A stretch of DNA of 63,317 bases, filler included, from Hyphochytrium catenoides (taxonomy: Eukaryota > Protista > Hyphochytriomycota), in NCBI GenBank assembly GCA_900088475.1. It is 8 parts of 8 records of this genome, joined end to end, with 100 filler letters (N's around TTAATTAATTAA, not from the genome) between each part and the next. Parts side by side here need not be neighbours in the genome. Positions count along the whole stretch, not along the records: positions 1 to 31,947 come from FLMG01003172.1; 7 more parts are not named here. The stretch is one strand, 5' to 3'. Both the position numbers and the translations under genes were made by a program. Each line of letters opens with the position of its first letter. The first letter of the stretch is position 1. Below the pieces are notes generated by a model. The model saw only the letters and a list, made by a program, of their open reading frames with translations, was not told the origin of the DNA and did no database searches. Positions 2,319 through 30,103 of the stretch are shown piece by piece.

Positions 2319-4170
2319 ATGAATTATGCTAAAGCTAGTAGTCTATCAGAGACCGAGGTTGGTTCTTGCTTTGATGATGATAAATTGGTACAGATATTAG
2401 TGAACTATTTACAAGAGCTGGTAGTGAAACCCAAAGGAAGCGCAACTTGCAGAAGCAAACACCTTCCATCATGCAGCGGATGGTCACGCACGTTTGGCGT
2501 GCAAGTTGGCGCAGGTGAGGGTACTCCAGGGGTACTCCGGCTTTGAAAACTTTCAATGGAGCGACGGGACACAGTGCGCCGTCAAGCACCTAGCTACACG
2601 AGAGGGGAGCAACTGTAGACTGGTGGTGTCGGGGGATACGGTTATGCCCTTCTCTTATTCAGTTGCATGTGCAGCCTCAAAGGGCACTAGCGGTGACCAA
2701 TAAACGGCAGCGACAAGGCATCTCAGTTGATAATAGAGGCTAGTACACACGAACAAGTGAATGGTAATGCCGGTGTCCATCTGAAGATCGACTTGCAGTG
2801 TCACCTTACGAAGGCATAACCATCATCCCGCAGCTTATGTTAGGCGGCTGGCGGGAGGTGCCGTTTGTTCGTTTTCCAGAAAGGCTTGTGAGAAGATGAA
2901 AGAACACTGCCGATGGTTGCGTCATTACAAGCCCTGAATAGGTGGTGGAGTTATCGATGAGTGCCATACCTGAACCGGCAACCTAGAGGAGGGAAGTTTA
3001 TGCAGGTCCCCATTCTCTTAAAGGAGGAGTGGGCTTCAAGTACGCTTCAATCGGCTGGATAACGTCAAAGATTCCTTCGCATACTGGGCATCATCAGATA
3101 CCTCTTGCAGAGAGCCCTATCACTTGCTGCAATTATCGACTCCACTCGGAAACGCAGTGGACTCACTTCACGGGAGTCCGATGAGGGAGACAGATGTCTT
3201 ATCTTCTCTCCGTGATTAAAGTGGAGTGTGCTAGATACCCTCTTCAACTCCCTTCATCGCGTGGGCAGAGCCATAGCAAAGACGAGAAGGTATGATTGTC
3301 TGAATTGCAAGTTGCTTGGAAATTATGGGAGTTGCTCTGACGCTCATTTTTGATGGCAGTTGCGCAAGTCTGGAGGAGTGATGCCGGACAGGAGGCGAGC
3401 TAGACGATTCCATAATAAGAAACAAGAGGAACGTCACCCTGTTGCCAGGTTACCTATGAGAAAGAAGTTGAAATGTTGGCATCTACTTCTAGTTTGGTGT
3501 TTGAAGGCAACGGCTCCGATGGTGAGGCCGTAAATAATGTCTGGAAGTGTCACCACAGGAATGTACCAGGTCGGGTGCGTGAGGTGAAGGAAGCAGGTGG
3601 CATTTCCTACTGCTCTTCCCAGCATGGGACGAGCTTTGGTCTACCATGCAGGGATATGTTTGCCAGTATGATGGAATCGCATTGACAACCTCACCATTGT
3701 TCCTCTGGAGAATGTCCACAAGAGGTGGATCGTAGGTTCTGTGGCAAGTGAAGAAGCGGGAGTTAAAACGATAAATTCAGAGGTTAACCCTGCTAGCCAA
3801 TCAGCCGGCACACTTGCGTCACGACAGTCTTCTTCTCGAGCGTACTATGCAAGCAACATGGCAGAATTTTCTAAGTACCTAGCGTTATCAGCCGTCTCCG
3901 CTGTTAGCGCGGTGCACTGAAGAAGACGATGTGGGTTTTGAAGGATCAGTATCAAGCAGTGCATCCCTCAGCGGCTCCTAAGCGCGCGGTGGAAAACCTT
4001 AACATTCAGGCACGATCATCCAGAAAGCGTGACCGCCGAGCAATTAGCTTATTTGAGGAATATTGTGGACCTCGGAAGGCTGCGCGGCGTTCCATCACCT
4101 GCGGGAACTGTGGCGGTAAGGGTCACAAACGCAGAAAATGCAAAACAGTTCGAATAGACAACTACAACTA
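2319..4170 (+). mobile_element. Degenerate Mutator-like (MULE) transposase remnant
   Basis: Fragments in MULE order with many stops and frameshifts: FAR1/WRKY-like ...HNH (~2815), SWIM-like CSSQHGTSFGLPCRDMFA followed by PLENVHKRW (~3610-3730), and a C-terminal zinc knuckle CGNCGGKGHKRRKC (~4100-4141). Confidence 0.6.
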
Positions 4171-4499
4171 ATTCATTGAGGTTATTGATCCTTCAAATCC
4201 CACATCGTCTTCTCCAATGCACCTCGCATTTTTATGGACGGCCGTCGGATTCGTTTAGAGGCGCGCTGAGAATGAACGGCACCCTCATCACTAGTCCATG
4301 CTTTCGTTTTCTCTTTGCCTCTTGGTTGACGCTTGTGGTTAGCGCTGTCATCATCAGAGTCAGATAATTCAACAAGGCCCTTGAAGATTGAAGATGCAGA
4401 TTCCGATGGCCGATGCCTTCTGCCGCCTGATGAACTGATGAGGCTTCACCTTCTGTGTCGAGTGTCGAGCTAGGAATGGATCTCTCACCCCTGTATCAC

Positions 4500-5187: not shown

Positions 5188-6556
5188 ATGCAGGCAACAG
5201 GAGTCATGACCACGGGAGGCAAAGACCTCGAGCATAAGGCTCAATTTGAGTCGCAGGTGTTTGCGGCTGAGATTATGAAGTCTCAAAAGATCATCTCAGA
5301 TGAGAAGTACGATCTTTACCTGTCACTTCTTGATGACTCCAATCCACACAGATGGGAGGGGATGGACCGTGCAAGAATAGCCAAGCTTAAGCACTTGCTG
5401 AAAACTGAGTACACAAGGCGACTTTGCTCGTCTCCGGATGGCTCCCAACCGAAGTATGCCCTGTTCAGGCTTAGTTCCAACAAAAACGAACAGGGAGGTT
5501 CCATCGCGTTACGCGTTTGTCCACCACGTGACTGGTTTGACACAATAGACCAGATACATCGTGTTAAACTTGGGCACTCTGGGATAAATAAGGTTCATCA
5601 AGTGGTAAGAGCCTCCTTAAGGCATTTATCGCCGGAATGGTGCTGATCAATGCATATCTGCAGATTCACGGCAAGTATGCTAATATTCCGAAGAATGTGG
5701 TCGTTGCCTTCATTAAGAACTGTCCCTGCACGAAAAGAAAGCGAGAGTATGTAACCAATAGACGTGCGTATGTTGTAAGGGCGCAATGCTGATGACTCTA
5801 TCAATTTCTAGGGGAGGAGCGGCACCAACGCCAACTGCTCCTGCAGGAAGTCTATCTCCCACCAACAGCGCGACTGGCGAAGCCCCAATTGTGACCCGTC
5901 CTAAAAGGCGACGCCTCACCGACAACGGGGAGTTTACAGATGCAGAACTGGTTGCCTGTAAGTTTGTTGCTCGTAGGCACTTCTTGGGCAAATGTCCGTC
6001 CTAATCTGCGGGTTACCTGCAGCTGACTTGCCGGTTTCAAGTGGAGCTGGTCATTTACGCGTCTATGCAGCTCGACTCCGAGGTGGCCAAGAGCTCAAAG
6101 CCACCATTTTGAGCTATGTGCGGAAAACCCGACTGAAGGCTGCATTTATCCAGACGTGCTGCGGCAATTTGAAGACCGTGACCCTCAGAACTGCAAGCGG
6201 CGTACCTGGTGTCGAAGCAAACCTTGACAATACCGTTGTCATCAACGCTCCCCTTGAAATTGTGTCCTTGACGGGAACCCTAGGTCCTGGAGAAACACAT
6301 AATGTGCATATATCGGTAGCAGACTCCGAAGGGCGCGTTTTTGGAGGAAATCTCATTGAAGGCGTAGTACAGTCGACAGCAGAGGTGTGTACTTTCCTGT
6401 CCCAGTCTTCTTTCTGCGGTGGCTGACCGATTCCTTTATACACAGATCGTGTTAGGGGAAATTGAAAACCTCGTCTTTCTGAGGCACCCCGATAAGGAGA
6501 CTGGATTGAACGAGCTTCAGGTGCACCGAGTCCAGGAGCTTCTTTGGGACGATTGA
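5188..6556 (+). CDS. Integrase H2C2-like zinc-binding domain + PPC/DUF296 domain fusion protein, 5 exons
   Basis: Four GT-AG introns (~5604-5663, 5747-5811, 5958-6022, 6385-6445) splice in frame. The product reads IHRVKLGHSGINKVHQV|IHGKYANIPKNVVVAFIKNCPCTKRKR, then NLS-like RPKRRR, then PPC RVYAARLRGGQEL..LEIVSLTGTLG..VHISVADSEGRVFGG..AE|IVLGEIENLVFLRHPDKETGLNEL. Stop is TGA at 6554-6556. Confidence 0.85.
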
Positions 6557-6676
6557 GTGGCTCCTCCCTGTGCCATTTAGCTCTAGACCATTCAGAAGAT
6601 TGGGGTGAAGACTTTTTATTACATCCTTTGTACATTTACTTGGCGGCTACTTGGCTAGTTCGTGTAGACATTGTCG

Positions 6677-8412: not shown

Positions 8413-9671
8413 ATGTCGCAGCAGCGTTTCGTTCATGCTAGCGGGCCGCGCCCAATTTTCAACAAGAGACAGCAGCAAAGCAAGTATCGGCCTCCGCAGG
8501 ATGAGTAAGACTGATCTCGATTTCGCACCTAGAGACGTAGTGAACCCAAACTAAAAGATCCTCCTACTTCAGGGAGTTGCCAGAGCCACCACAAAATATT
8601 ATGCACGACAAGAGAGTTATCCGGGGAAACACGTACTCCAAGCACACTTATGAGGCGGTAAGGAATAGCTTGCACAAGTTTATGGTGTATTCTGAGACCG
8701 TATCTTAGGCCATGCGGGCAGAAGAAGAACGCCTATCTAGAGAACAGAAGGAAAGAGCTCGACAACAGACAAAGCAGCCTACTGTCTTTCCTCAGCGTGC
8801 CGGCACACCACCACCTGTTAGTGGTCGCAAGCATATCGACATACAAACCGAAACGTTTCTGGAAGAGCTTAGTGATGTTGCTCCGGAGAAGGAGGCCGAC
8901 ACGCAAACCGACCCTATGATGGACCAGCCCATGGCACCCCTATTCATGCCTAAGAAGTCGGGCGTTGATTCCTCCACGCAAATAGAAGACAATGATCTAT
9001 TTGACTTCGATCTGGAGGTGCAGCCTATTCTGGAGGTCCTTGTAGGAAAGACATTGGAAATGAGCATGATGGAGGTTATGGAAGAGGAAGAACTAGCCAA
9101 CATCAGATCCCACCAAGATGAATTTGAGCAGATCCGAAACGTGGAACTTGCTGAGGTGCAGAGATTAGAAGCTGAGGCGAAGCGAAGGCTGCAAGAGAAG
9201 GTAAATATATGGGACAGGTGTTCTGCCTTGTCCCCTCTCTAAACGATGACATTGACGATTGTGTCCTCTTGTTTCATGTAGACACGAAGGACGAAGGAGG
9301 AGCAAATCAGAAGACAGGCAAGAATGGAACTGGAGAAGAAGATAGCAGCCCGAGCTTTCAGTCAGTCATATCTCAGGGACATCAAGATGGACGTGTTTGG
9401 TCGACTATTAGAGCAGGGACATCTCTACGATCCCCTTAGAAAGGAGATTAGCACCATTTTTGTGCCATGGCTGTTGGACCAAGTGGTAGAGGGCCTGGCG
9501 CCAGTGGCAGCCTCTCATGCCGCTTTGGACGAGCTTATTAGAGCTTCCTTAGCACCTCCACTTGTTAGACTGACGAGCTCAAAAGACGCTCCACAGGAAC
9601 AGGAGCCCACGCCCTCTTCTTCCCAAGAACCCCGTCCGGAGAGCGTTGCTGAACCGGTCCCAGGAAGCTAA
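8413..9671 (+). CDS. RSPH3: Flagellar radial spoke protein 3, 4 exons
   Basis: NIMHDKRVIRGNTY, TPPPVSGRKHIDIQTETFLEEL and PKKSGVDSSTQIEDNDLFDFDLEVQPILEVLVGKTLEMSMMEVMEEEELANIR are RSP3 signatures. Confidence 0.96.
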
Positions 9672-10147: not shown

Positions 10148-11717
10148 TCAGATGCAGGCCCAAACCCAATGGACTTGTACAGCAGGAAGAACAATCAGAA
10201 GCACTCGACAGAATCTGGGGTGATCCCACAACCAGAGAAGGCCGGCTGAGAGGTGGTGTCCTAAGAGACTTTGGGCCGAATAACTTACCCTAACAAGATA
10301 AGTAGCTATCACCGGTTCGCCGTCACTTTCCGAGGCTTCAATGCAGCTAATCCTACAAGCTCGCTCTCCTTGAACGCTGATGTTGACGTGTGGTCCGAGC
10401 CCAACGTTTAGTATAAGCTTTGTTCCATGTCCTCCAGGATGTGTCTCTCGCCTCATAACAATGCGAGGAATCAATTTTTCACTGGCACTTGGGGCGGGCT
10501 CCAGTAACCGAAGAGGGCCAATCCCTTTTTCAACCCATTGCTGGCCTTCTCCGAGCTTGAATAGTTTGGCTCGGAACTGGGTGAAAGGAGCCATCAAAGT
10601 CAAAATGAAAGTGCGCAATCCTGCTGAGAGTGGATCCTTACCTGCATAACCATTTTCTCTCCCTCCTCTCCATTCGACACTTCATTTGGGCCTTCAACTG
10701 CATGCGAATAGAGACTTAGATGGGATAAGACTAGAGACTAGGAGAAGGCAATAGAGAGAAGGTACCCCACTATTAGTATCGAAGAGACTGTGGGAGATAG
10801 TTGGGACAGGATCAAAGGCTGCTAAACCCACCGCTTATGTTATCATCCTCAAGAGTGTTCTCGCCTGCGCCGTCATCCTCCTCCGCTTCCTGCTGTGTAG
10901 CCTCGCTATCCATCTGTGAGACCGCCCATTGACTATCACTCTCTACCGTTTGGCTCTGTCCATCGAGACTCATTTCCTGATTCTGACTACCAAAACCACT
11001 GCCCTGGCTCTGTGTCCCAAAGCCTGTGCTCTGACTCTGGGAGTAAGACGAAGCGAGCAAGGCGAAAGGACTCTGGGATGCTGAAGACGCAGCTGAAAAA
11101 GAGCCAAACCCAGAAACTTTAGGAGGGGCGCTGCCAGCTGAGCCAAAGCCAGTTCCAGAACTGGGCGGCTGGATAGTACCAAACCCGGACGAACCATTCC
11201 CTGCTCCAAATGAGCCAAAGCCTGATGCTTTTCCAGAAGCTTGATTCTTAGCAGCGAGAGCGGCAAATGGGGATTGCTTTTCAGCAAAAGAGCCAAAGAT
11301 AGAGCCACCATGTGTAGGTGGGCCCTTTCTTTCTTTTTTGTCGTCTGCCTCACCGCCTTTTGTCTCTCCTTTGTTGACACCACCCACCGTCTCTTGTGCT
11401 GCTACGCTAACCTCCCTTGCATCTTCGTCCACTGGTTCCTCCACAGTATTGGGGTCGACCTCTATATGTTCTGTGGACGATAGCCTCGGTTTCTTGACGG
11501 GCGATCCCTGTGGTGGACTTTCATAAGGCAAGGAGCTCCTCAAGTTCCGGGAGACCAAACTTACCGGCTGACTAACTTCGCTTGTGCGCTTGGGCATAAC
11601 ATGGCCCGTCCTTGGACTTGTCGACATGGCACCTAGAAGTTTGCAGGACGATCCTCCAGCAGAGTGCTCCAATCTTCCTGTACCCCTGGAGAACTTCGTC
11701 TGTGTCGGGCTCGCCAA
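10148..11717 (-). CDS. Nup50/RanBP3-like protein (FG repeats + RanBP1 domain); 3' end uncertain
   Basis: NLS PVKKPRL, many SGFG/FGSF repeats, then the Ran-binding domain SNGEEGE..FRAKLFKL..WVEKGIGPLRLL..RIVMRRE..KLILN. Confidence 0.85.
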
Positions 11718-12620: not shown

Positions 12621-15600
12621 TTAGTCTTCAGAAAAGTTTGAAGCTGCGCCATCGCTCCTGTGTCCTTCGTCATTCCCTTCCGCATCTGTTGCGCTCTGGT
12701 CGCTTCCCTGCCTTCTTTTCTTATTGGTGGCCTTTCTTTGCTTCTCTCCTTTCCTATTTCCTCCAAGGTCAGCCTCATCACTTCCGTCTGACCTTCCACC
12801 GCTCTTGCTGCGCTGTTTTCCAGAGGGAGCCGATTGGACTCGAGTTTTGTCCGAGGAGGCTAGTTCTTGTAGTCTCTTGCCAGATGACTTGCTTGTGCCT
12901 TTCGCTGTCTGGGGCCGCTCGCTGAGCTCAGACTGACGACCTGGCTTCTCTCCTCTTTCTCCTTTGTCTGCTGTCTGGATCTGGGCTGCGTCCTTCTTCT
13001 TCTTGGAATTACCTGCCTGCTCGAGAACCTTGTCCGTCGTCTGCGACTTTTTGATTTTCTGCCCTGTATCTTCACCGTCGCCTGGTTCATATGTCTTGAC
13101 GCGCTTATCCTTCTCTCCTCGTGTCTTTTTGGGCCCATCGTCTGACGTTTCCGACTTGGGAGCCTTGACATTATCGTCACTCTCCTTGAGCTTCAATCGC
13201 TTGGAGTTTCCTCCGTCCCTCTCTTTTGGATAGTTAGAGAAGACGGTTCAGTGACACAAGCAAAGGAGGGTGGGATTTGACTTGACTTACTCTCAATATC
13301 AGCATCTCCTTGGGCGTCAGTTGGCTCTCTTTCGGCATCGTACCGTCCATTAGCATGTACCTTCTTTAACCTTCTTAGGGCTTTCCGGACTTCGGATTCG
13401 TTCGGATGCTCCCATTGCGTACGTCTACGGGGTGGGTTGACGGCGTGTATGCGACAGAAAAGATTGGTAAGCTCGGGCATGGAAAGAAAAAAAAGGAAAA
13501 GGTATGGCGGAAGAGCGAGGGACGAAAGAGAGAGAGAGAGAGAGAGAGAGAAAATAAAGTGTGTCTATAACGTCGGACCAGCAAGTTATAAGGAAGAGAG
13601 AACAAGAGTAGGACACAAATGAAGAGACTTCATCGTACTTGGTCGCATGGTCCGTGTAATAGATACGTCCACTTTCTGTCTGGGCGAGCTCCCAGCGCGG
13701 ACCCAAGGGAGTTCTCTCAGCTGGGAGAAGCTTGATCCTCACCTCAATCTCCCTCTGGCAAAAGAGTATCATTTAGGTCATCTGTCGCGCTGAAAGATCA
13801 GCTCTACCTCTTCTCTTGCACTTGCGTGGAGCCACGATGCCCGCCTTCTTATAACTTTCCTAGCCTTGTCATCTACTTGCACTGTCTACTATGCGTTCCT
13901 TGTCTTCCACGCCATCAGCCCGATGCCCTCTCCACACTCTGAAATCGACTGTACCTGCTCATCGACATCGGACCCCTTCTCCTCCTCATCCTCATGTTCT
14001 TCTAACACAGTGACCGTTAGATAAAGCACTTAAAAATAACAAAGAGGCTTTAGTCGGTGCTACCTGGAGCTTCCTTAGACGCCTGCTTCCTTTCTTCCAA
14101 TGTTCTTCGTCTTAACTTCAATTTGCCCTTCGTCAACTTCTCGAAGAACTCTGCATAATTCCAGCATAGGATTAGAGACAACAAAAGCTCCCTCTCTCGC
14201 TTCTTGAATATATATTGCCCTTGTCCACCTCTCTCTTCTTCAGAATACAAGTCATCTCGACTAGCGGTACCGATAACCTGTCATACTATCTCTGTGCTCT
14301 CGCCCTCTACCGATGAAGTGTTTCTTCCTCTTTGCCCATATGGTTCATTCAAGCTCCAATGCCGGCATTTGTTCTCGTTCATCATCTCTTTCGAGTTAGG
14401 GAGGCTCTACCTACCGGATACATCGAAAGGAGACCCGAACGTCTCGGTCAGCACTTCGCATTGGTCCTTGGATAGCTTGATGCCAATATCCAACAATAGA
14501 GACTCCAGGGATGCCTGCGGGATTAACCATCGACTCGGTCAGTAAATCCCATTCGTTCTTTGGAGAGCATTCTGCCATAACCAAACAGAGAGGCTCGAGG
14601 CAAAGTGGGAAATAACCCTAAGCTTCTGGGAGTCGAAGATAGCTTTCAAAGACTATGGGTGTTATGGACAGAAAGGAGTAGTTGTAGAGCCGACATGAGT
14701 CTTGCCTAGAGTTGTCCAACTATGGAGAATGACAATAAAGCTTGTTACGTGGGAAGTATCGTAATACCTTTTCATCATCTTCAAGCAAGCCCTGGAGTAA
14801 AAGCTGCAGACCTCGGAAGGGATTCTTGGCATTTCTTTCTACAAGGACTTGGCGCAACCTGGAGAGAGTCCCTTCCACGTCGGAAGTTTGCCGTTCGTCT
14901 TGCATGCTCAAAGATAGCTGCAGGAATATTAAGCGTGAAGAGTGGTACAGCCACAGAGGCAATAGGTATGAGGGGAACCGAGACGACGAGCAACGGGTGT
15001 CCAGCAAATGGAATGGGTTAGTCTAGGGTTCCGAGTGCTTCAGCAACCGTTCAGACCTACATCAAACACCGCGTGCTGAATGGAAGAAGGAGGCTTTGTG
15101 ACAGGCTGTTCTAGTTCTTTCAACTTCTGCTTCTGCTGCTTGAGTGCGCTCTCCAGCTTGAGGATTCTACCGATCATAAGGAGAACGGAAAGCAGAATGA
15201 GAAAGGGGCCAGCTAACTTGCTCGGCACCACGGAGGAGTTGAGACCGGTAAGGAAAAGTAAGACAGAAATACGATACTTGAGGTGAACGAGGAGAAGGAT
15301 AAGTGATGCGGTAGTGGTTGTACCTGTCTGCAGCTTCATCTGCCACTCTCTTTATCTCTTTATCTTTCCTCTCTAGCTTTCGATTTAGCGTTTGCACCTC
15401 TTTCTCAACTTCTGCACTTCGTTTTGCAGCTTCCGCCGCTTGCTGGAGCTCCTTAATTGTTCCTTCTCGTTTCTTGCTGTTGCCCATTGCGAAGGATGAC
15501 AACGAAGATACGTACAAGGTCAGATGTGAGATTACTCAGGGAAACAGCTGCAGGAAAACCGAAGTCCGGAGAAAGATATAATCTGACGGAAGCTTACATT

Positions 15601-18600
15601 AGCTCCTCCAAGTGTGTGATACACTCTTCCTGCTGCTTGTAGCTTAACTTCGTCTCCTTCATTTCCCCTTCTTCCACCTGATCTCTGTCGTCCTCCGCTG
15701 CTTGAGGGGCTTGTGGACTCTTGTCTTTGGCTCCATCCAATGTCCTCTTCTTTGTCTTTGGTGAGTCTTGTATCTCCTCGTCACTTTTCATCTGCTTTTT
15801 CTTTCGGCTAGGCTTAGAGGATTTTTTGGTCTCAGTCGACTGCTGTCTGGGGAGAGCTTCGTCTCCTTCCACGTCTTCGGAGGCATCACGTTCATCCTCT
15901 TCACTTTTATTCCCGTCATCCCGTCCGTCGCTCTCATTCTGCTCTTCGTCCTCTTCAGTATTCAAGGTGCTTTCTGTTCTGTCTGGGTTCTGGATGCAGT
16001 CTTCCTTCTCTACGGCTTCCACCCCAGAACTTTCTTTTAGTGGCTTTTTCCCTTCAATAGGTGTTCTCTCTTCCTCGAGCTCCTTCGCAGCTCCATTTCT
16101 GGGCTTTATATTAAACTGTGCGCGCACTTGAATTTGCCCCACTAGCAACTTGTCTCCGCTCGAACCCTTGACAGAGTTCTGATTGTCCACCTTATTTGCG
16201 TCGATGTTTCTAGTTGCTTTGATAAGTGGAAGCCACTCTTCGACGGAGTACCCATCTCTCCCTTGTAGAGATGAGAGTGAAAGCTCGCAACTTCCAATCA
16301 AAACATCGGCTGTTCCTTGCTTCATGAACACGGAGAGAACAAGTTTGGAAGAAATGCAACGACCTACATAAAGCTTCCTCTTCAGAAGCTCCGGGGGGAG
16401 ATCGTTCTCCTTTCTCTCTTTAATCTGAATGGTGCTCTCTTCGACATCATCCTTGTCCCTGCCCTCACTCTTCTTGTCCATTAGCTTGATCTCATAGTCG
16501 CAGGCGGTGACGGGATCGTAGGCAGTTAGGTAAACCGGCACCAAACCGCCATCATTTTGTCCTTCTTTGGCCTTGTAGTTGACACTCTTCCGTATTGAGA
16601 CAACCATCACCCGATGAAGCCGAGCGGTGGACTTGCTCTCTGTCAAATGGACCTGAGCCTGAGACGAGGACGGATAGAAGAGAATAGAGAACAAGTAAGA
16701 CCAATCCGCCAGCAACATAAGACAACCTGTGTAGAAGGGAGGCAATAGCACCGCACGCTACTCATGCATTTGCTCCTGCTCGCTTACTCTCTTCCCAGCA
16801 ATTATCCTGAATTTGCGTCACCGGATAATCTCACGCTTATCTCTCTCTCATCCTCTAGTCTCGCGCTACCTTGGCCGAGCCCAGGTTATCAGGTATTCCG
16901 TCTACTTGAACCACGTGTGACTGCAAAACCGGCAGGTCGATACGCGCGGTATCCTCAGGCGCGGAGATAGGAAGCACATGACTGAAGTTCCATTGCGGAC
17001 ACCTTCCACCCTACGTAAAATTGACAGGAAAAGCAAACCGACAGGAGTGTATAATAAGGCAGAGACCCAAATGACACGAGGTAAACTCTAAATGGGACAA
17101 ACAGCAATGAGATGGAAGTAAGCGCAGAAGATTGAGGAGTCCCATCGAAGTTCAGAATGAATCGTACACATTAAGTGAGTCGCTCTTCCTAATCATGTCT
17201 CTCGTCTAACTTTAGTGTCAGTTATCACCCTCTGGGTCTCTCCGCATTTTCTCTCTGGATCACCTTAAGAGACCTACCTCGGGGACCACTGGCGTGACAA
17301 ACGACAGTCCATGAGGCAGTAACGTGCATTGAGCGTAAGGGCTCCTCATACATCTCAGATGAGCGGAGAACTCGGACCACGTCATCTCTTCTGCGCTCTC
17401 TCTTACCCTACTCTGGGACCACGATTGGAAGGACACTGACAAGAGAGAGGAGAGCGACGACAGAAAAGCGCACAGTTTTGGTCGTTGCCTCAAGGCCGAG
17501 AGGACAGACACCTTGGGGGTCTCTTTGTCCTTTTCAATGGGATGCTCCGCCAAAAAGAGCAGCCTTTGAAAGCACAAGGGCGAGTACAGTTAGTGCCATG
17601 ACAAGGCGTCAATGGATAGACCTAGAACAGGGCCTCACAACAGAAATGGAGTGAGGAGTGAAAGGTTGGCTCCAACACTTCAAAGGAAAAAGAAAGGAAA
17701 CGGAGAGAAAGAGTAAAGGCGGAAAGCAGGAGAATGACTCAGACCAGTTAGCCGCCTGCAAAAAGAGAGGGTTCCGAGTTACCTGTGAGCAGAAACAGCT
17801 GAGAAGAAGGGTAGCCGTGCAGCCATCAGCCTCTCTCTCAACAGCTCCACAAAGTCCTCACTCTCAACTAATCGCAGGGAGAGGCCTCCGATCGCTCCTC
17901 CTTCTTTCGCTCTCCCCAGTCTCACCCTCCGCAGAAGACTGTTTAGGACTCTCTCCTCTCTTGGGGAACAAGAAGCATTGAAGACAGCAGAGCTCGGATT
18001 GAGGGACAAAAATTGGCTCTCAATACTTCCCCAACGGAAACCACAGGCGGTGGAGCAGCCTGCAATATCATCAACCGGGTCAGAGGATCCAGCAGATCCC
18101 AGTTAGTAGGAGAAGGAGGACCGAAACCACAAAGGATAACGTAGGAGGCAGGGGGATACCTGTTGCCTTGTCCTTCCTAACACTCTTCTTAGCAGCTGCC
18201 TTGGACTTTGATTCCGCCTTTGATTGTCCGACCTTCTCAGTCTTATCATCTCTCTCTCCCTCGGCTGGTTCCTTCTTCTCTCCCTTGATTAACTTTTCGT
18301 CTCGCTTCAGCGTTATATCTTCGTCGTCCTTCCGTCCCTTCTTTTGTGCTTTGTCCTTCTTCTCCCTCATCTCGGATCCAATTGCTTTGGGCCCTTTGGG
18401 CTCTGCTGGAGGCGGAGCGGCCTCGTCTCCTAGGGTAGCGGAGATGGGATCTTCTACCTCTCTAGAGCGCTCGACCTTACCCTTTCTCGAAGCTTGTCCG
18501 TCTGTCTCCAATGCTCGATGATGCTGAAGCCATTGCCAGGGGGCCCTATAGAGGAATCATTAGGAGAAACACGCTTTTATGGAGACTGAGGTGTATGAAA

Positions 18601-21600
18601 TGGGTGAGAGAGCAGGAAGAGCACAACGCGATAGCGGTTTCCTTATCCCTCCTTCTCGAGCTTTGTGCTCTTACCAAATATGCTCGTTCGTCTGTCGAAG
18701 GCAGAGGGAGAACTCATTATTGAGGCATGGATCAGTCGCCCGAACAAGCACAGTTTCAGACCCCAAAGCAGCCACTGTGACGAGAAAGTATGTCTGGCCC
18801 CCTGCAGAGCTCTGGACGTAAGTAAGCAGTTAGTTACGCTCTGTTATGGGTCGTTTCTTCCGTCTCAGCCTCTGTTTGGGTTTATATCTCTATACATTTT
18901 TATCTCCGTCTCCACTCTATCTAGTGCATCTTACCGATAGCTCCCTAATGAGGTGTCTGAGTCTGGCTTCCACTCTTCCCAATTGAGTTCGTCTGAGGAC
19001 ACCCTGAATTATCGCTTTGGATACATCATCCGAGTGGCGAGCGGAAGACTGGCACCGCACTTGGTCCAAAAGTAGACCCAACCCAGAGGCATCATCCAAG
19101 GGTGAGGTTGTGGGCACTGATAAATGTGGCAGAGAATTGGACAGACATCACATGCCAAAGGTTAGGAATAAGCTCGAGTCATTTTCCTATCACAATGAGG
19201 AGACAGACTCACCATCCTTGGCTTCATTGCTTGGGGGCAGGCATTTCATCATAAAGGCCACGAATTCCCTTTGACTGACCATGCTCCGTCCCCGGGAGAT
19301 AGCAGACCAAACTCTACAGACCAGCGGCGGAAGGCAGGGAGGAGAGGAGGGCACGACACAGTTACCACCTTAAGTCTAAGTGAAATGCATAAGAAGAGGG
19401 CATTTAAGAGGAGGCACTAAGACCTACAGCCTATAGCGGACCATCATGACATTTTTCACTCATAAAATGCGAGAGAGTGCATAGTTCAGATGAAAGATCA
19501 AAGTAGCGCCAGAGGAGCTGACAAGTGAGAGGAATAATGTTTCGAGAAAGAAGTGATGATGGATAATCCTACCGAAACACGTCTGTCTCAAACTCTGGTG
19601 TGGACTTATCTTCGCCTTTGGACTCCAAGCCAAAAGGGCTCTCTGTTTTCGCCTCCTTTTCTTTCCTTTCGTCTCTTTCCTTCTCTTTATCTTGAGTACC
19701 TCTTTCCTCCTGACTCTTCTTAGCTTCAGGGCTGCCCCCTTCCGTCACTTCCTTTTCCTTCAGCTTCATACCCTTCTTTTGATTTAGCTTGCTGTCCTCA
19801 GTACTCTCACCCGCTTTAGGTCCTTGGGAAGCCATAGTAGAGTTCTCCTCTCGTCCAGCCCCTTTCCCCTTCTTTTGTGGATCCCCTTTAGCCTTTGACG
19901 GCTTGGTTGATTTCTTCTCTACCTTTCCAAAGGCTGTTAGAGCTGCTCGATAGCGTTCCTCTGTTCATTGACAGATTAAAGAAGGAGGCAAAGGATAAGT
20001 GAAACGAAGCGATCTGTGGATAAGTGAAACGAAGCGATCTGTGGTCTGGGCGAGAATAGGAATAGACGATCTTTCCTTTCCGCCTTCCTCTCCTATTCGC
20101 CCCACTTACCGTAAGACTTAAGATCTATTGTCTCCCTGCCTCTATCCATCAACGCTATAAGACAAGCATTTATCCTGTCACTCAGACTTCCAGTGGCATC
20201 ATCTCCCCCATGTTTAGCCTTTTCATCCATTGATAAGGGTGGAGCAAAGGCCCTGCACAACCGCCGGACCGTTGTTTCAGAGATAGAAAGGCCAAGCGAC
20301 CTTAGCGCCAGAATAAGCCCTGTACCAAGCGAAGCGAGAGGTGACTATAAGGCTCAGTCGCTGACAACCCCGAGTCAGTTATTACGCTGTGAAGGACGTT
20401 GAAAGACCTACCCTGTATAATGTGAGGAGAAGGGGAAGGAGAGAGGAGCTGTAGGGCGTGAAGATTCGCAGGAGATAGAGAGTTCTCCTTTAACACCATG
20501 GCCACCCTTGCCAAAAGATCAGGGAGTGGAGTGAGCTCTTCCTCTTCAGGATTTTTGTCGGATGCAAAAATGAGAAACTCTTCAAGCGAAATGCTGCCAT
20601 CCTATGAGGTGGCAAAATGGTCAACCATTGCGGCTATCTGATGCTGCTAGCTATATTCCCTCGTCGCACTCGTCCTCCAACGTCTTCTCTTTCTTTCTCT
20701 CGCCCACTGCCCTGTTCCTCTCTCTCCTTTACTCAACCTAGCGATGCAGGGACTCTCTTAGTAGTTGGCCATCTCACCTTTGTTCCCACGTCGAACCTAT
20801 CCATTAAGAGTTGGAGGTCATTTTGGCTGAGGAAAAGACCCTGATGTCAAGACAGTGGTTTGAGAGACGATATCCACGTTAGACTCAGGGAGAAGCACAC
20901 TCCATGGACGAGACCCACAAACGGCTCAGTAAAAAAAGACAGCAGGAGTCATTGTGGAGCAGGGAAAGACGACGACCACACGAGAACAGGTAGAAGAAGA
21001 GCTTTTTATTTACCAAGTCGCCCAACACTATCTTGAGCTCCTCCAGGCTAATGGTGCCGTTGCGATCACGGTCGAAGCGTCGAAACACGCTCTCAAAGTT
21101 GTCAGTGGACTGAGGCAGGAGGTGGGAAGAACAAGGCTGATCAATGGAGATGTTGAGAAAACACAGAAGGACGTAGAGACTTCATACAAGCTATAGAGGG
21201 ATATAGCAGAGACAGACAACGAGTATTTGGCTTCCCCAACATGTATACCGTGGAGCAAGGAACCGAAAAAGCAAATGCAAATGGCTGGAAGACTCACCTC
21301 AGGTCCAGCTTGTTCTTCCAGAGCACCAATATGCATAACACGCTGAAAGAGAACAAAGCCTTCCTCCTTCTTCTTGATCACTCCCTTCATATTCTCCTTC
21401 TGGCATTCCTTCACAGTGACAGAGGAGCCGGACGGGGAGTGCACCGTCTCAACAAGGGTGTACCGCATCTTCTGTCGCAATAGGGCGGCATCACTAACTC
21501 TCTCGAGAAGGCTGGAGAGGATATCGTCCTTTATCCAGTCTTCAACCTCCGCGCGACCCCCTGCTTTTCTGATCGGACTCTCGGTGGGACCCAAGGAGTC

Positions 21601-24600
21601 AGCCTCTCTGGCCCTTATACTTGTCTTTTTCTCCTTGTCCTCGCCTTCCTTAGCACCTGCAGTGGGGTTGTCTCTCTTATTCTCGTCTCTTCCCCTCTGG
21701 ATATCTTCTTTTAGACCGTCGTGTTCGGTTGCGAAGATCCAATTCAAAAGGCCAGAAAGAGTGAAACTCTCTTCCGCGCTCTCCTCTGGAAAAGCCTTTG
21801 ACCAGACGTATCGGAGCTACAATTGCAACAAACGCATGTAAAGTACATAGTGGGCAGGGTGAGATGAGAGCATTCCTTAGATGTGAAACGCGAAAAAGCC
21901 GGTGCAAAAAGGAGATGTGTCCTGTGTAGGATATTTTGCAAAGATACAATCTCATGACCTCAGAACTAAAGGAAAGACGACCGATCGAGTGCCAGCTTAC
22001 AGGGAGGACCTAGTCCGGTGCAATGCCTACCTGTTGAGCGGTTAAACGCGGTTCAACATGCATCGCATCGAAGAAGAGAGCCAGATCTGGTAACAATTAC
22101 TGTTAGAATCAAAAGGCAGGGTGGACAACAGAAAGAGATAGCGATCGTTGCGCAACAGTGCCCCACAGCTGTTGACTTCATAGAGAACCAGTGGGACTGA
22201 AGGGGAGGTACAAAGCTGAGGGACCTGCTCTAGAAGACAAGTGATCCATTTCCCTGTGGCCACCAGCCAGGGTTTTGTCCTCGATGACCTTTCTCCACAG
22301 ATCCAAAGCAGCATTCCGAGAGCTCATCTATAAGGGATCGGGTGATTAGGTATAGGTAAAACAGAAGATATAGAACATCGAAGTGGGCTCAGGGGATTGA
22401 CAGAAAGGAAATATTTAGACCTTTTTCCTAAGCGCGGTTCGAAGCCCCTCTCCGGCAAGAGATGTAGCCGTTGATAGCTGCGGTTGGTGCTGGAAGCAGT
22501 CTTCACAGAGGGCTCGACCCGGCGGGAAGCGAACAAAGCAGAGAGAGCAGAAACGTCGGACACAGGGGATACCTGCGCAGACGTTCTCCGCTTTCTCCTA
22601 AAGTCGTTAGGTCAGAAGGACGTGATATCAAATAACTTAGAAGCTAGCTATATGTAAGCATATACATGGAACTGGTGATCACCTTTGATAGACCTCTCCC
22701 GCAGTTGTCACAGTCCATAGCTTTCGCAACTTTTTGGCCTGAGGCAAACCGGGGCAGCTTTTCCATAAGCTCACTGTTCCCAGCAGCTTTTGACTTCAAT
22801 AGACAAAGTGCAATTATCAGTGGGTGATTGATGTCTCGTCTTTTCCGTAACACCTCATACCTTCTTCATCTTTAGAGCTCTAAGTGCTGCAGTCCTTCGT
22901 TCCTCAAATTTCTGCAGGCGCTGAGACTTGTGGACCTTTGTTACTCTTTTTATCACCTCGTCCGTCTGGCTTTGCTCCTCTTCTGAGGGCTTTTGAGTCT
23001 CGTTTTCTTTGTCAGAAGAGATTTGTTCTTTGTCCCCTCTCCCTTTGTCTCTCTCGGCCTGACCTCCGCTAGTGGTCTGACTTTTCTCTCGTCCTTCCTC
23101 CAGAGCCCCTTTTGGCTTCTGTCGCTTGTCTTTCTTTGCAGACTTCTGTTGACTTTCTCTGAAAGCTTCTGTGCCCTCCTCGTCGTCCTCAAGGTCAACC
23201 TCCTTCTTCTCCTTTGATTTGGCTCTTTGCTTCTCTGAAACTTTCTCTTTATCTGGCACTGCCTCCTTTTTGTGTAACCCATCCGTGGCGACATCCTCGG
23301 TTTTCTTGTTGGTCTCTTCTTCCCACTTCTGCTTACGTCTCTGTATATAATCATAAAGCCGCTGCTTTTCCTGGCGAAGAGGGAGAATGACAATAGACAG
23401 TCCCTTAGATTCTAGAGTACGCTTCAGGGATGCTGGAATTGTACCCATGCACAACCTCTTCCAGCTGCCTGCTTTACCTTCTTGTTGGCCCATCTGTACA
23501 CCGGAAGGGTAAGATAAGATCCCGGTAGTGAATTCCGAGTATTTTCATCAGCAGGAACGAGGTCTCGCGCGCCGAGGATCTAAATAGCAAAGAGGGGTAC
23601 AGATGAGTGACACACAGGCCGGTTGGGGTTTGTGACGCATTGTCTCTCGATCTGGCTCTACCCCAGCTGCGTTCGGTTCCCCTGCCCACTGCTGACCTCC
23701 TTCTTTGGACTTAGCATCACTCCTATATTTGTCTCTAGTTGAAGAGAGAAATTTCTTCCTTCGCCCTTTGGAACAACTCGTGTTGTCTCTGTCCTAATTG
23801 GTCCGGAGAAAATACGCTTCGGTTCCATCTCTGAGAAAGTGTCTTACCTCAATAGAGAGAGAACCTTCTCTGTAAGGATCCACGAGTATCTCATCGTCTT
23901 TGGCGTCTTCTTCCATTTGAGCCATCTCGCCATCTTCTAATCCCTCCTGCTAGAAAGTGCCGACAATTAGACACGAAGCGAGTAACAATGGCAAGGTAGC
24001 AGGAGACCGCAAAAGGAGATAGTGCTGCGAGTGGAGACGGAGTACAGTCATAGATTAAGGCCAAGGGGCTCGCTAAAGAAATTCAGGCAGGAAACCAATG
24101 GATGTGCTGACTGAAGGGAAGGATAGCATCTCCTACCGCAAAAAGAGAGAAGAAGTCATCGCCAGCAATCTTTCCTGTCCCCTGTCGGTCTAAAAAATCA
24201 AAGAGCACCGACAATCTGTCATCCGTCAGCTCGTCCAGGGAGACTCCCAAAGACAACAGCTTCTTTTTCAGCTCCGTACGGCTGTATTGTTGAGAAAGGG
24301 GAAGAAGGGCTTTCCTTATGTCCGAGGGGGAGACCTTTGGAAGCGGGAGGAGCACGAATATTGGATGAGACATCGACCAAGGCCAGAGCCGAGTTGTGAT
24401 AGTTAGTTGATCAACCCAGGGTAACTCAGACTCACTTTCCTCAAAAGAAACTCCCGAGCTTCCTCCAACTGAATCCTGGTTTCTATACCCTGAATCCTCC
24501 CAACCTCTCCTCTCTCATATCCGCTTCGCGCGGTCAGCTGTACTTCTTCTTCACGCTCTCTGGCACTGAGGACCACCGGCTCAGCCATGGTGGGCTCAGC

Positions 24601-27600: not shown

Positions 27601-30103
27601 AGGACCAGCTGTTGTCTATGCTTCTTCTGCTTACAGTCTTTACTGACCGGCATATCCTTTCCTCAATACCAGATGCTCGCAACAGACTCCAGTCAACGCA
27701 TTAAGAGCCACATCCACGTATCCACCACGAAGGGCCTCATAGCTGCCATTCAGCTTCGCATAGCCCTTCTCTATCATGCAAACCCTGGCAGAACAAATGA
27801 TATTACCATATATTCTACTGGTGGTCTTGGTCCTTTCCTTTGGCTCTACAGTTCCAGCCCGTAGTACCCTCGCAAACTCTTACTTCGCTTGCTATCTTTA
27901 GGAGGCAATTAATGCACTATTCACTCGGGTACACTTTCTTATCCCGTACAATATCCTCCTCAAACCATCTATACCCTATAGGCTCAAGCCTTCAAGAGTT
28001 TCTGTCTCACCAGAGCTCATTTGGATCCTTGGATCTTCCAAAATAGGGTCTGCCTGGGTTGTTCTTGGAGAAGCCGAAGATCGGGAGGCGGTCATCGAAG
28101 ATGACGTAGTGCCATACACAGTTCTGCACGTTAGCGACGTTAGCAAAAGTGAGTAAGAGAGGCACCAGACTCTTACGAAGCACAGAAAGGAGGTCAAAGT
28201 TGCAGGTGAGAGAAGTCATCTGAACTCTCAGGGAGGCACTTATACACAGGAAAGAATGTTACCCGAAGAGTAGGCACGGACAAGAGAGCAAGTTACACCT
28301 TCATGAAACGGCAAACAAGTATTCCCTGGTCCTTGAAGCTCTCTCCTTTCCAGAAAACTTGTTCCAGAAGCTCGTCCGCGGTAGCCAATACACTCAGTGC
28401 CCCTGGCATGGAAACGGATTGTCAGGAGCCAATCCCAAGGACATACTGGAGGTAACAGCCTAGGGAGCGACGAGGCCTGAACAAAGGGGAGGATACATCC
28501 TGTCCTGCGGAAGAGGTAGCACTGGAACCTGAAGACAAGGCGCTTATCAAGACCAAGAGGTAACTGATTACCCAAAAACCAACAGTCTCCCAAATTTCCC
28601 TGTATGACGTCGCTGCTAGAGGCTCCATCGGCAAACAGTCTTCCACGTGTGCACCACACTTCAGCACTGTTATCTGCGTATTCTTCATCATCCTCTGCGT
28701 CGCCCTGGCTCTCTGTGGAGTTATCGGTTTCTTCGCTGTGGAAATAACATAGGGCCGTTGATGAAGAGAGGCAGGAAACGGGTGAGGCTGCTAATGTCTA
28801 AAAGAGGGTGACTGTTGGTCACAAGCTCGAAGGAGAGGGTAAGACTTTGCTAAGGCGAGTGCCGGAAAATCTATAGAGACAGACGATAAACAGGAAGGGT
28901 TAATCCGGGTGCTGAGCTATGCTTACCTATCCGGGCCACCGTCAGCCCATATTGGGCGATCCCAACGGAGTTTCTCCTCCTTTAGCATCTTCATCACCTG
29001 CTGCTGGAACTGTGAACCATTTCCCTTAGCATATTTCTGCTTATGCGTGCTAGTTAGCGGATTAGCAGTACTTAGAGGGTTGCTTCCTCCTCTCTATGTT
29101 CTCTTTAATGTACTGACAGGACCAATGGAAGCGTCCGTTCCGCTTCATCTACTGTTGTCGGAAAGCCAGTGAAGATATCCCTGCGTTCATCCACTCTCTC
29201 TTCAGCTGAACCCCCCATAATTGTCCTTTAGCTATTCTCACTTTTCTCCGCGCCCTTTTCCACCATCTCGTTTATGGATTAATCGGGCGACCTAAGCCTC
29301 TGTACTAGCCTCCCTCCCTCCTCCTCTTGTTCTTTGAAGCTCACCTGGCAGATACTGGCTCCACCGCTAGGATCAGCCTCTGTTGGCCCAAAGACTGGGT
29401 CACACCACTTCTCCCCATCTTTCTTACACTTCGTAACGAGCTTGGCGACTTTTTTGACCACTAACGCCTCCACAGCCAAGAGTACGGACTCCAAAGCTTC
29501 CCCTTCTAGACTCTCAATCTTAGCCGAGATAATGGTGTCCTCAGCTGAACAGGTGACGTCCACCGCATGCTCCCTGAGGACTTCCTCAAGGCTCCTTTGT
29601 GGCTTTGAGAGCCATTCGTCCAGCTTCTTCTTAGCGCCATTGACGAGCTTGCTAACGATTGGCATGGCTCAACTAGTGGGCAGGAGCAAAGAGACTTGCG
29701 CTGTCCTGTCGACCTCTCCTTCTTTGGGTTAAAGAGCAATACTACTGGAGCACTTCCCCGTCTCCCACATATCAGGATCCTGCTAGGTACTGGGCCATGA
29801 AGACCGGAAAGGACAGTTCTTACCCGTTGCTTTCCGGTCCTCCCTAACAAATTACAATCAAGAGCTGTTTCCGTCAATAGAGGCCTGCACTCCGCTCCGC
29901 TGTCGTGGTCAATCCCTTGCTCCTCCCATCTGTTCCCTGTCTCTCTGCTCCTCTCACTGTCTCGCTCGCTCTTGAGACTGGACACCTTCACTCTTTCTCT
30001 TCTTCTTGATGTCCTTTCGATCGATCGCCGCTGTCGTGAGGACTTCCAAGCCATCATCGCCAAGAGACGCAATCTTCATCCGACGGTGAAATGTTTCATG
30101 GAA
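12621..30103 (-). CDS. Giant multi-exon calpain (CysPc, domain III, EF-hands, 8-Cys zinc finger, C2, coiled coil, WW)
   Basis: Intact catalytic triad QGNLGDCWFL, GLNYKHAYGL, LKLRNPWG, plus WCDPVFGP, DDRLP and IEKGYAKLNGSY. Domain III GRWDEKTAGG..NNPQY. EF loops DRQGTGKI and DRDRNGTISLEEL. Zinc finger CDNC..CAGIPC..FCSLC..CEDC. C2 DVLIGSCELSL..EEWLPL. WW LGPRWELAQTESGRIYYTDHATK|RTQWEHP. Exons run continuously on the minus strand; the 5' end and single-gene status are inferred. Confidence 0.8.
19993..20044. repeat. Perfect 25-bp tandem duplication in an intron
   Basis: GGATAAGTGAAACGAAGCGATCTGT x2. Confidence 0.95.

Follow-up and report, generated by a model that had tools for sequence, protein, structure and literature searches.

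The PPC (DUF296) domain has been described in two settings to which the gene discussed here can be compared. In prokaryotes it makes up proteins such as Vibrio VCA0587 (PDB 2P6Y), a Salmonella protein (2HX0) and Pyrococcus PH0802 (2DT4), and in the land-plant AHL family it accompanies an AT-hook with an R-G-R core, where it serves nuclear localization and contacts with other AHLs and with transcription factors (PMC4209074). The retroelement integrases offer a third point of comparison. Their Ty3/Gypsy-type HHCC finger is represented by the Pfam family Integrase_H2C2 (PF17921), and its canonical ligand pattern is H-x(3-7)-H-x(23-32)-C-x2-C. Several host genes, SCAND3 (ZBED9), KRBA2 and GIN1, retain integrase-derived sequence; SCAND3 and KRBA2 are described as sharing a DDE-type integrase domain and as deriving from GINGER2 (PMC3575427). 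The gene at positions 5188-6556 (+ strand) of a 63,317-nt stretch of Hyphochytrium catenoides DNA (the whole of that stretch is called the window, and coordinates refer to it; the gene's contig is C2385) encodes a PPC domain preceded by a module that probably descends from an integrase finger.

The gene and its architecture are very probably real. The reading favored here, with a probability of roughly 0.55, is that it is a genuine host gene which joins an integrase-derived, non-catalytic finger to a PPC domain and whose product would be a nuclear DNA or chromatin factor. Intron 1 splits the finger, and the protein-family, structure and similarity searches were run exon by exon; the joined coding sequence (CDS) was used for translation, for alignment to the paralog, for the proportions of nonsynonymous and synonymous differences (pN and pS) and for motif counts. 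The features of the gene are as follows.

5188-5604, + strand: exon 1, amino acids 1-139; N-terminal region that includes the conserved KIISDEKYDLYLSLLDD motif and a predicted hairpin, as well as the finger's first half (H124, H130); its ATG follows an in-frame stop, the GT donor is at 5605, and identity with the paralog is 78-83%
5664-5746, + strand: exon 2, amino acids 140-167; the remaining half of the H2C2-like finger, with C159-P-C161, and the basic run KRKR
5812-5957, + strand: exon 3, amino acids 167-216; low-complexity Pro/Ala/Thr/Ser linker
6023-6384, + strand: exon 4, amino acids 216-336; bulk of the PPC/DUF296 domain
6446-6556, + strand: exon 5, amino acids 337-372 and stop; PPC C-terminal strands and a conserved acidic tail, almost identical in the paralog
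5530-5729, + strand: H2C2-like (integrase HHCC-type) module, H-x5-H-x28-C-x-C, split by intron 1 (5605-5663)
5897-5914, + strand: RPKRRR (amino acids 196-201), basic motif and predicted nuclear localization signal
6385-6445, + strand: intron 4, 61 nt, GT..AG, removed in RNA-derived contigs of public runs X1 and X2
6058-6523, + strand: whole PPC domain across intron 4, with degenerate His positions (H308/N309/H311, N325)
6557-6633, + strand: 3′ untranslated region (UTR) of at least 77 nt; the spliced contig of run X2 reaches 6633

The gene is of a short-intron eukaryotic type with five exons, and the joined frame has 372 codons and one stop. The span given in the original prediction coincides exactly with the CDS, and its picture of an intact gene with four introns and a frame that is open after splicing is upheld. 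Introns 1-4 are 59, 65, 65 and 61 nt long, all are GT..AG and each has a CTRAY-like branch site; none of these lengths is divisible by 3, so the frame depends on intron removal. The peptide from WFDTIDQIHRVKLGHSG to KYANIPKNVVVAFIKNCPC is present (interrupted by intron 1), as are the other features quoted earlier, the His/Cys pattern with its C-x-C pair and RPKRRR; the protein's basic runs are KRKR (at 163) and RPKRRR (196-201). Just two public runs, X1 and X2, from two studies, contain parts of the window, and in contigs of both the 61 nt of intron 4 are precisely skipped. No intron-less copy of the gene is present in the genome, which indicates that these contigs come from spliced RNA. They are limited to exons 4 and 5 and the 3′ UTR; splicing is thus confirmed by RNA for intron 4, and introns 1-3 lie outside the coverage.

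The genome searched (61 Mb, 4759 contigs) contains exactly two PPC loci, each preceded by the same N-terminal region. The second, on contig C227, agrees with the first in its five exons and in intron positions and phases, and the exon lengths (window/paralog) are 417/417, 83/80, 146/119, 362/362 and 111/111 nt. The differences are all multiples of three, including the 27 nt by which the paralog's exon 3 is shorter, and the frame is kept. The two proteins are 72% identical; pS is 0.80 (saturated) and pN is 0.19, from which it follows that both copies are under purifying selection. The ratio of nonsynonymous to synonymous rates (dN/dS) over the PPC domain is about 0.07, and the N-terminal region and finger are constrained as much as the PPC domain. 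The linker is loose (51% identity between the paralogs), yet RPKRRR is identical within it. The two loci resemble each other only as far as the exon edges, the flanks being dissimilar, and the neighboring RSP3 gene is single-copy in the genome; the pair is therefore an old dispersed duplication. A second haplotype, a whole-genome duplication and a mixed assembly or second organism were considered as sources of the paralog and rejected, on the same two grounds of a single-copy RSP3 and dissimilar flanks.

The four putative zinc ligands are all replaced in the paralog (H124Y, H130Y, C159N and C161S). Over the 48 residues around them identity is 75%, and the chance that all four ligands should fall among the 12 changed sites is small (P 0.0025). 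Such joint replacement is the behavior of a metal-binding tetrad that is lost as a unit, and zinc binding by the four residues of the window copy is supported by it, if indirectly.

The PPC half of the protein is the more easily recognized. Exon 4 matches the Pfam PCC family (PF03479) at 73.1 bits (cut-off 25; E 3.1e-20) over profile positions 1-110 of 117, and the paralog matches it at 82 bits; NCBIfam gave no match to exon 4. Solved chains in the PDB match exon 4 at E values from 1.5e-15 to 1.9e-5, with 2P6Y at 1.5e-15 and 2HX0/2NMU and 2DT4 also found. The C-terminal strands that lie beyond the Pfam model (…F.R..D..TG.xEL) are on exon 5, which is identical at 14 of 26 residues to the C-terminus of a small stand-alone PPC protein, P0003 (BLASTP E 1e-6). 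The domain is therefore full-length, as originally claimed, and the prokaryotic proteins named above share this full length, including the C-terminal TG(Y/L)xEL strand; the window protein differs from them in an 8-11-residue loop insertion, about 220 extra N-terminal residues and an intron. A word search with exon 4, whose length filter hides longer fusions, yielded four small stand-alone PPC proteins (P0002-P0005, 34-47% identity), the closest of them encoded on a contig with prokaryote-like gene packing.

These four proteins, 2P6Y and 2HX0 carry H-x-H and GGH, whereas the window protein has H308-N-V-H311 and GGN325 and the paralog has H-S-I-N and GGS. The degeneracy of the His positions noted earlier is thus present, with the reservation that the first position can also be aligned as a one-residue insertion (H-x-x-H) and not only as a His-to-Asn change. 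A "metal-less" PPC domain is the state suggested by these lost His residues. The prediction of a complex of three copies of exon 4 scored 0.27 against a mark of 0.32 and counts neither for nor against trimerization.

For the N-terminal half, the most useful evidence comes from other loci of the same genome. Among the weak PF17921 matches is an open reading frame (ORF) on contig C2923 with an uninterrupted finger that has H-x28-C-x-C. Its match to Integrase_H2C2 scores 25.2 bits (E 1.8e-5) and covers positions 6-55 of the 59 in the profile, and the ORF aligns without gaps to window exon 2 (BLASTP E 7e-6) with the C-x-C pairs in register. A copy on contig C3421 is 94% identical to it. In both, RIISGEKHDMMAKYLRD lies about 90 residues upstream of the finger, and the KIISDEKYDLYLSLLDD motif of the window protein is at the same distance. 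Comparison by hhalign gave three colinear matches, to the N-terminal motif (P 0.02), the first finger half (P 0.14) and the second half, on exon 2 (P 8.7e-5), with a combined P of 3e-5 and a gap of 5 residues between the finger halves on both sides. A gene on contig C4422 has the N-terminal motif and exactly the H-x5-H-x28-C-x-C spacing; it lacks a PPC domain and has three exons, and a phase-0 intron nine residues past its second His occupies the place of window intron 1. All these loci share with the window gene an N-terminal motif (…IIS.EK…) about 90 residues before an H-x28-C-x-C finger. The C3421 and C2923 copies differ from it in having an uninterrupted finger, frame breaks, repeat surroundings and no PPC domain, and they may be closer to a mobile source.

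L039 1417-2420 (about 159.5-160.6 kb of C4422), - strand: third, PPC-less member of the family
C3421 (L040) 1-353, 543-800 and 2513-2839: segments listed with the repeat-bracketed finger ORF

A RING/RAWUL-like ORF at L039 423-1091 (+ strand) is convergent to the C4422 gene. The C3421 and C2923 finger ORFs are themselves low-copy and are bracketed by segments of dozens of copies with 85-96% identity; C2923 (L036) also has Copia-like reverse transcriptase (RT)/RNase H remnants, and a downstream C3421 ORF (1982-2611) includes an SH3-like "YEVGALVGLKK…" stretch that has no Pfam match.

The window's own sequence adds to this. The H124-x5-H130-x28-C159-x-C161 pattern was found by a motif check of the 372-amino-acid protein; its H-H and H-C spacings are inside the PF17921 family range, and the layout of that family is followed, with a hairpin-like "LRV..P", then H...GH.G..K, about 28 residues and (F/Y)(I/V)K.C. 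A profile was made from the Gypsy-type H2C2 integrase fingers of this genome. The end of exon 1 matched its positions 15-32, covering both His residues, and exon 2 matched positions 49-61, at the Cys pair. These exon-wise matches are colinear, with shuffle P values of 0.009 and 0.013 (Fisher's combined P 0.001). Of the ESM look-alikes shown for exon 1 and for residues 80-139, the best-scoring named cluster is Integrase_H2C2/zf-H2C2, as are the other named families (0.81-0.89); this is a lead and not proof. The H2C2 assignment of the original prediction is thus reasonably supported by the bridge loci and the ESM look-alikes, and integrase ancestry of the finger module, as judged from sequence, is quite probable.

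The Cys pair of the window protein is one residue closer than in the canonical pattern. Decay of a C-x2-C pair was considered and rejected, since the C-x-C spacing is kept in C4422 and C2923; it is rather the signature of a small local family. Besides C-x-C, the window gene differs from Integrase_H2C2 proteins in its internal intron and in that no rve core or SH3-like domain follows the finger. Indeed, none of the genome's 80 rve (DDE core) matches lies on the window contig or near the paralog on C227, and the space between finger and PPC domain is too small for a DDE core, in agreement with the earlier statement that the catalytic core is missing. Like SCAND3/ZBED9, KRBA2 and GIN1 the gene would be a host gene that retains integrase-derived sequence, but it keeps the finger only. 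Since SCAND3 and KRBA2 share a DDE-type domain, at least as PMC3575427 presents them, the window protein is not a domesticated integrase of their type; the link to KRBA2/SCAND3 or Ginger elements drawn in the original prediction is not supported, in that no specific link was found, although no dedicated comparison was made.

Relatives of the front half were sought more widely. A phmmer search of exon 1 against 1.84 billion representative proteins returned one match, a Sel1-repeat protein that is a repeat artifact, and no integrase; a metagenome contig scan with an alignment of exon 1 found no relative, a word search with the N-terminal exon of the C4422 gene gave no candidate, and no paper linking PPC/DUF296 with an integrase finger was found. 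The front half is thus without detectable described relatives, consistent with the earlier remark that this was not recognized as a described family. From the protein set the protein of this genome is itself absent; the lineage is thus poorly sampled, and the missing relatives are suggestive and not proof of novelty. The protein is best described as a new architecture whose two component domains are known, the finger occurring in a new C-x-C variant.

Several results weigh against the favored reading. Exons 1, 2, 3 and 5, searched singly, gave no Pfam match and no H2C2 in particular (NCBIfam likewise gave none for exon 1), and a genome-wide PF17921 scan returned 43 Gypsy-type fingers, the window locus not being among them. 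The bridge ORF on C2923 falls 0.3 bits short of the Pfam gathering cut-off (25.5). The exon-wise profile scores partly reuse the His/Cys pattern that had already been noticed in the original prediction, and the profile test is for that reason weak by itself. C-x-C departs from the canonical C-x2-C. The AlphaFold model of exon 1 was unusable (predicted local distance difference test score, pLDDT, 42), that of the C2923 finger ORF reached pLDDT 65 with three helices in the right places, and the models, poor to middling as they are, show no specific match to integrase N-terminal domains: with the C2923 finger model, Foldseek found nothing below E 4 (PFV integrase appeared at E 8.6, which does not count as evidence) and the VIA-wide structural search gave generic helical bundles only (Z at most 6.1), while a PDB profile search with the bridge ORFs gave nothing. 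One of the two paralogs functions although it has none of the four ligands, and the fold may accordingly not need zinc. No source for metal binding in PPC domains was found in the literature. RNA support is restricted to exons 4 and 5. Nuclear location, oligomerization and nucleic-acid binding are argued by analogy.

The possible function can nevertheless be outlined. The product of this gene, one of two old paralogs, would consist of a lineage-restricted N-terminal region, the finger, a basic linker with RPKRRR and a prokaryote-type PPC domain. The finger would be a non-catalytic descendant of a retroelement-type integrase HHCC/H2C2 N-terminal domain, in its local H-x5-H-x28-C-x-C variant. 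The KRKR and RPKRRR clusters could act as nuclear localization signals or DNA contacts, the PPC domain would oligomerize by analogy with the solved PPC proteins and with plant AHLs (PMC4209074), and the finger and basic linker would hold DNA, chromatin or partner proteins, in a structural or regulatory role rather than an enzymatic one. Contacts of the finger, to DNA or protein, would be zinc-dependent in the window copy and zinc-independent in the paralog, and the ligand-less paralog may co-assemble with the window protein in mixed oligomers. A role as a chromatin- or DNA-binding oligomer is a tentative proposal, put at somewhat under even odds.

The likeness to AHL proteins is one of layout. 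In both, a short basic or DNA-contacting element lies N-terminal to a C-terminal PPC domain that is expected to oligomerize (PMC4209074), and the PPC core E-I-(L/V)-S-L-(S/T)-G is kept in the window protein. The 372 amino acids contain neither RGR nor GRP, the only basic runs being KRKR and RPKRRR, and lacking an R-G-R AT-hook the protein is not an AHL. The AHL hexapeptide G-R-F-E-I-L is A-P-L-E-I-V here, the PPC domain is nearer the stand-alone prokaryote-type proteins than AHL and there is an extra 160-amino-acid N-terminal module. AHLs are a land-plant family, and the host here appears to be something else, to judge from the nearby radial spoke gene, introns of about 60 nt and a genome of 61 Mb. 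No match to light-harvesting proteins came from a scan of the genome that was run without a positive control. The convergence on the AHL architecture that was first proposed therefore reduces to an analogy.

Among the other explanations, the one that fares best accepts the architecture and doubts the function: the protein may be no chromatin factor but a cytoplasmic PPC protein that binds a small molecule or protein, with the finger used for protein-protein contacts. Prokaryotic PPC proteins are without known function, and the window protein has no AT-hook. Integrase HHCC domains, moreover, mainly drive multimerization. The two conserved basic clusters, which resemble nuclear localization signals, argue the other way, as does the service of the plant AHL PPC domain in nuclear localization and in interaction with AHLs and transcription factors (PMC4209074), and this alternative is considered unlikely, at about one chance in six.

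Slightly less probable again is an N-terminal module with no relation to integrases: a helical domain specific to the lineage, whose His/Cys pattern and weak H2C2 scores arose by coincidence or convergence. The lack of Pfam matches to the window exons, the failure of the PF17921 scan to flag the locus, the phmmer search of exon 1 without an integrase, the unusual C-x-C spacing and the generic helical-bundle matches of the structural searches are all what such a domain would give. It would not account for the match of the bridge ORF to Integrase_H2C2 together with that ORF's match to exon 2, for profile matches that are colinear and equally spaced, for the ESM look-alikes or for the joint loss of the four ligands in the paralog, and integrase descent remains the better account of the module.

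That exons 1-5 represent two adjacent genes is improbable. On this explanation exons 1 and 2 would encode a finger protein that ends at a TGA in intron 2 (5790-5792), and a separate PPC protein would start from an ATG at 5786 or 5792. Intron 2 of the window copy does contain these two ATGs in frame with exon 3, read-through from exon 2 does meet a stop, and the RNA contigs cover only exons 4 and 5. But the paralog, which conserves RPKRRR, has no ATG upstream of it in the frame of exon 3, so that translation of RPKRRR there requires splicing between exons 2 and 3; this is the best available argument for a single gene. Splice sites, phases and frame are also kept in both copies despite differing intron and exon lengths, and the same N-terminal module is attached to each of the genome's PPC loci. 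Intron retention or an internal promoter could yield a PPC-only protein from the window copy.

Least probable is that the gene is an accessory or captured ORF of a mobile element and not a domesticated host gene: H2C2 domains are normally part of transposable elements, and the finger relatives on C3421 and C2923 sit among high-copy repeats and Copia remnants, but the window locus is single-copy DNA without terminal or flanking direct or inverted repeats and without rve or RT nearby, its neighbors are ordinary genes, and there are just two copies, with saturated synonymous divergence, purifying selection and conserved introns.

These neighbors include genes for a class-II DAHP synthase, RSP3 and a RanBP1-domain protein and fragments of calpain and EF-hand genes. 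Together with other features of the window they are as follows.

204-2221, + strand: class-II DAHP synthase gene in several exons, with PF01474 on ORFs at 204, 682 and 1533
3907-3951 and 4183-4227: inverted repeat, its 45-nt arms separated by 231 nt and complementary at 89%
8712-9671, + strand: radial spoke protein 3 gene (RSP3), two exon-sized ORFs (Pfam 7e-63 and 4e-15)
10148-10615, - strand: exon-sized ORF, RanBP1
13425-13769, - strand: exon-sized ORF, WW
24083-24370, - strand: exon-sized ORF, EF-hand
28240-28656, - strand: exon-sized ORF, calpain (Peptidase_C2)
15594-16751, 10812-11717 and 21028-21747, - strand: long ORFs without a Pfam family

The radial spoke gene indicates that the organism builds flagella or cilia. 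The inverted repeat (3907-4227) sits in an ORF-poor stretch of about 3 kb upstream of the finger-PPC gene. In the genome as a whole, at least 43 matches to Integrase_H2C2 and 80 to rve point to a rich load of Gypsy-type and other retroelements. There is a single Zn2Cys6 (PF00172) match, and the chitin-synthase-like GT2 matches are only modest, so a typical higher fungus is an improbable identity for the organism.

It is a more speculative idea, and on balance a doubtful one, that an AHL-like chromatin factor arose independently in a protist or early-branching lineage. Only the HHCC finger of a retroelement integrase would have been exapted, in a new C-x-C variant from which a small host gene family was seeded, and joined to a bacterial-type PPC domain without its conserved His positions; the paralogs with and without zinc ligands would associate through the PPC domain in mixed oligomers that tune DNA or chromatin binding. 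The practical value of the finding is modest, because the family seems to be restricted to a single lineage with sparse sampling, and no phenotype is known for it. If the reading of the gene given here is true, recruitment of the PPC domain to a partner that binds nucleic acids would have happened on at least two occasions, to an AT-hook in land plants and to an integrase finger here, which would argue for PPC as a general oligomerization platform for chromatin proteins. The gene would also be a domesticated integrase that has kept the HHCC finger alone and acquired introns, and such cases readily escape notice, since an intron defeats a domain scan. The paralog pair, in which the four putative zinc ligands are all present in one copy and all absent from the other while the rest of the module is conserved, is a natural experiment on the need of this fold for zinc.

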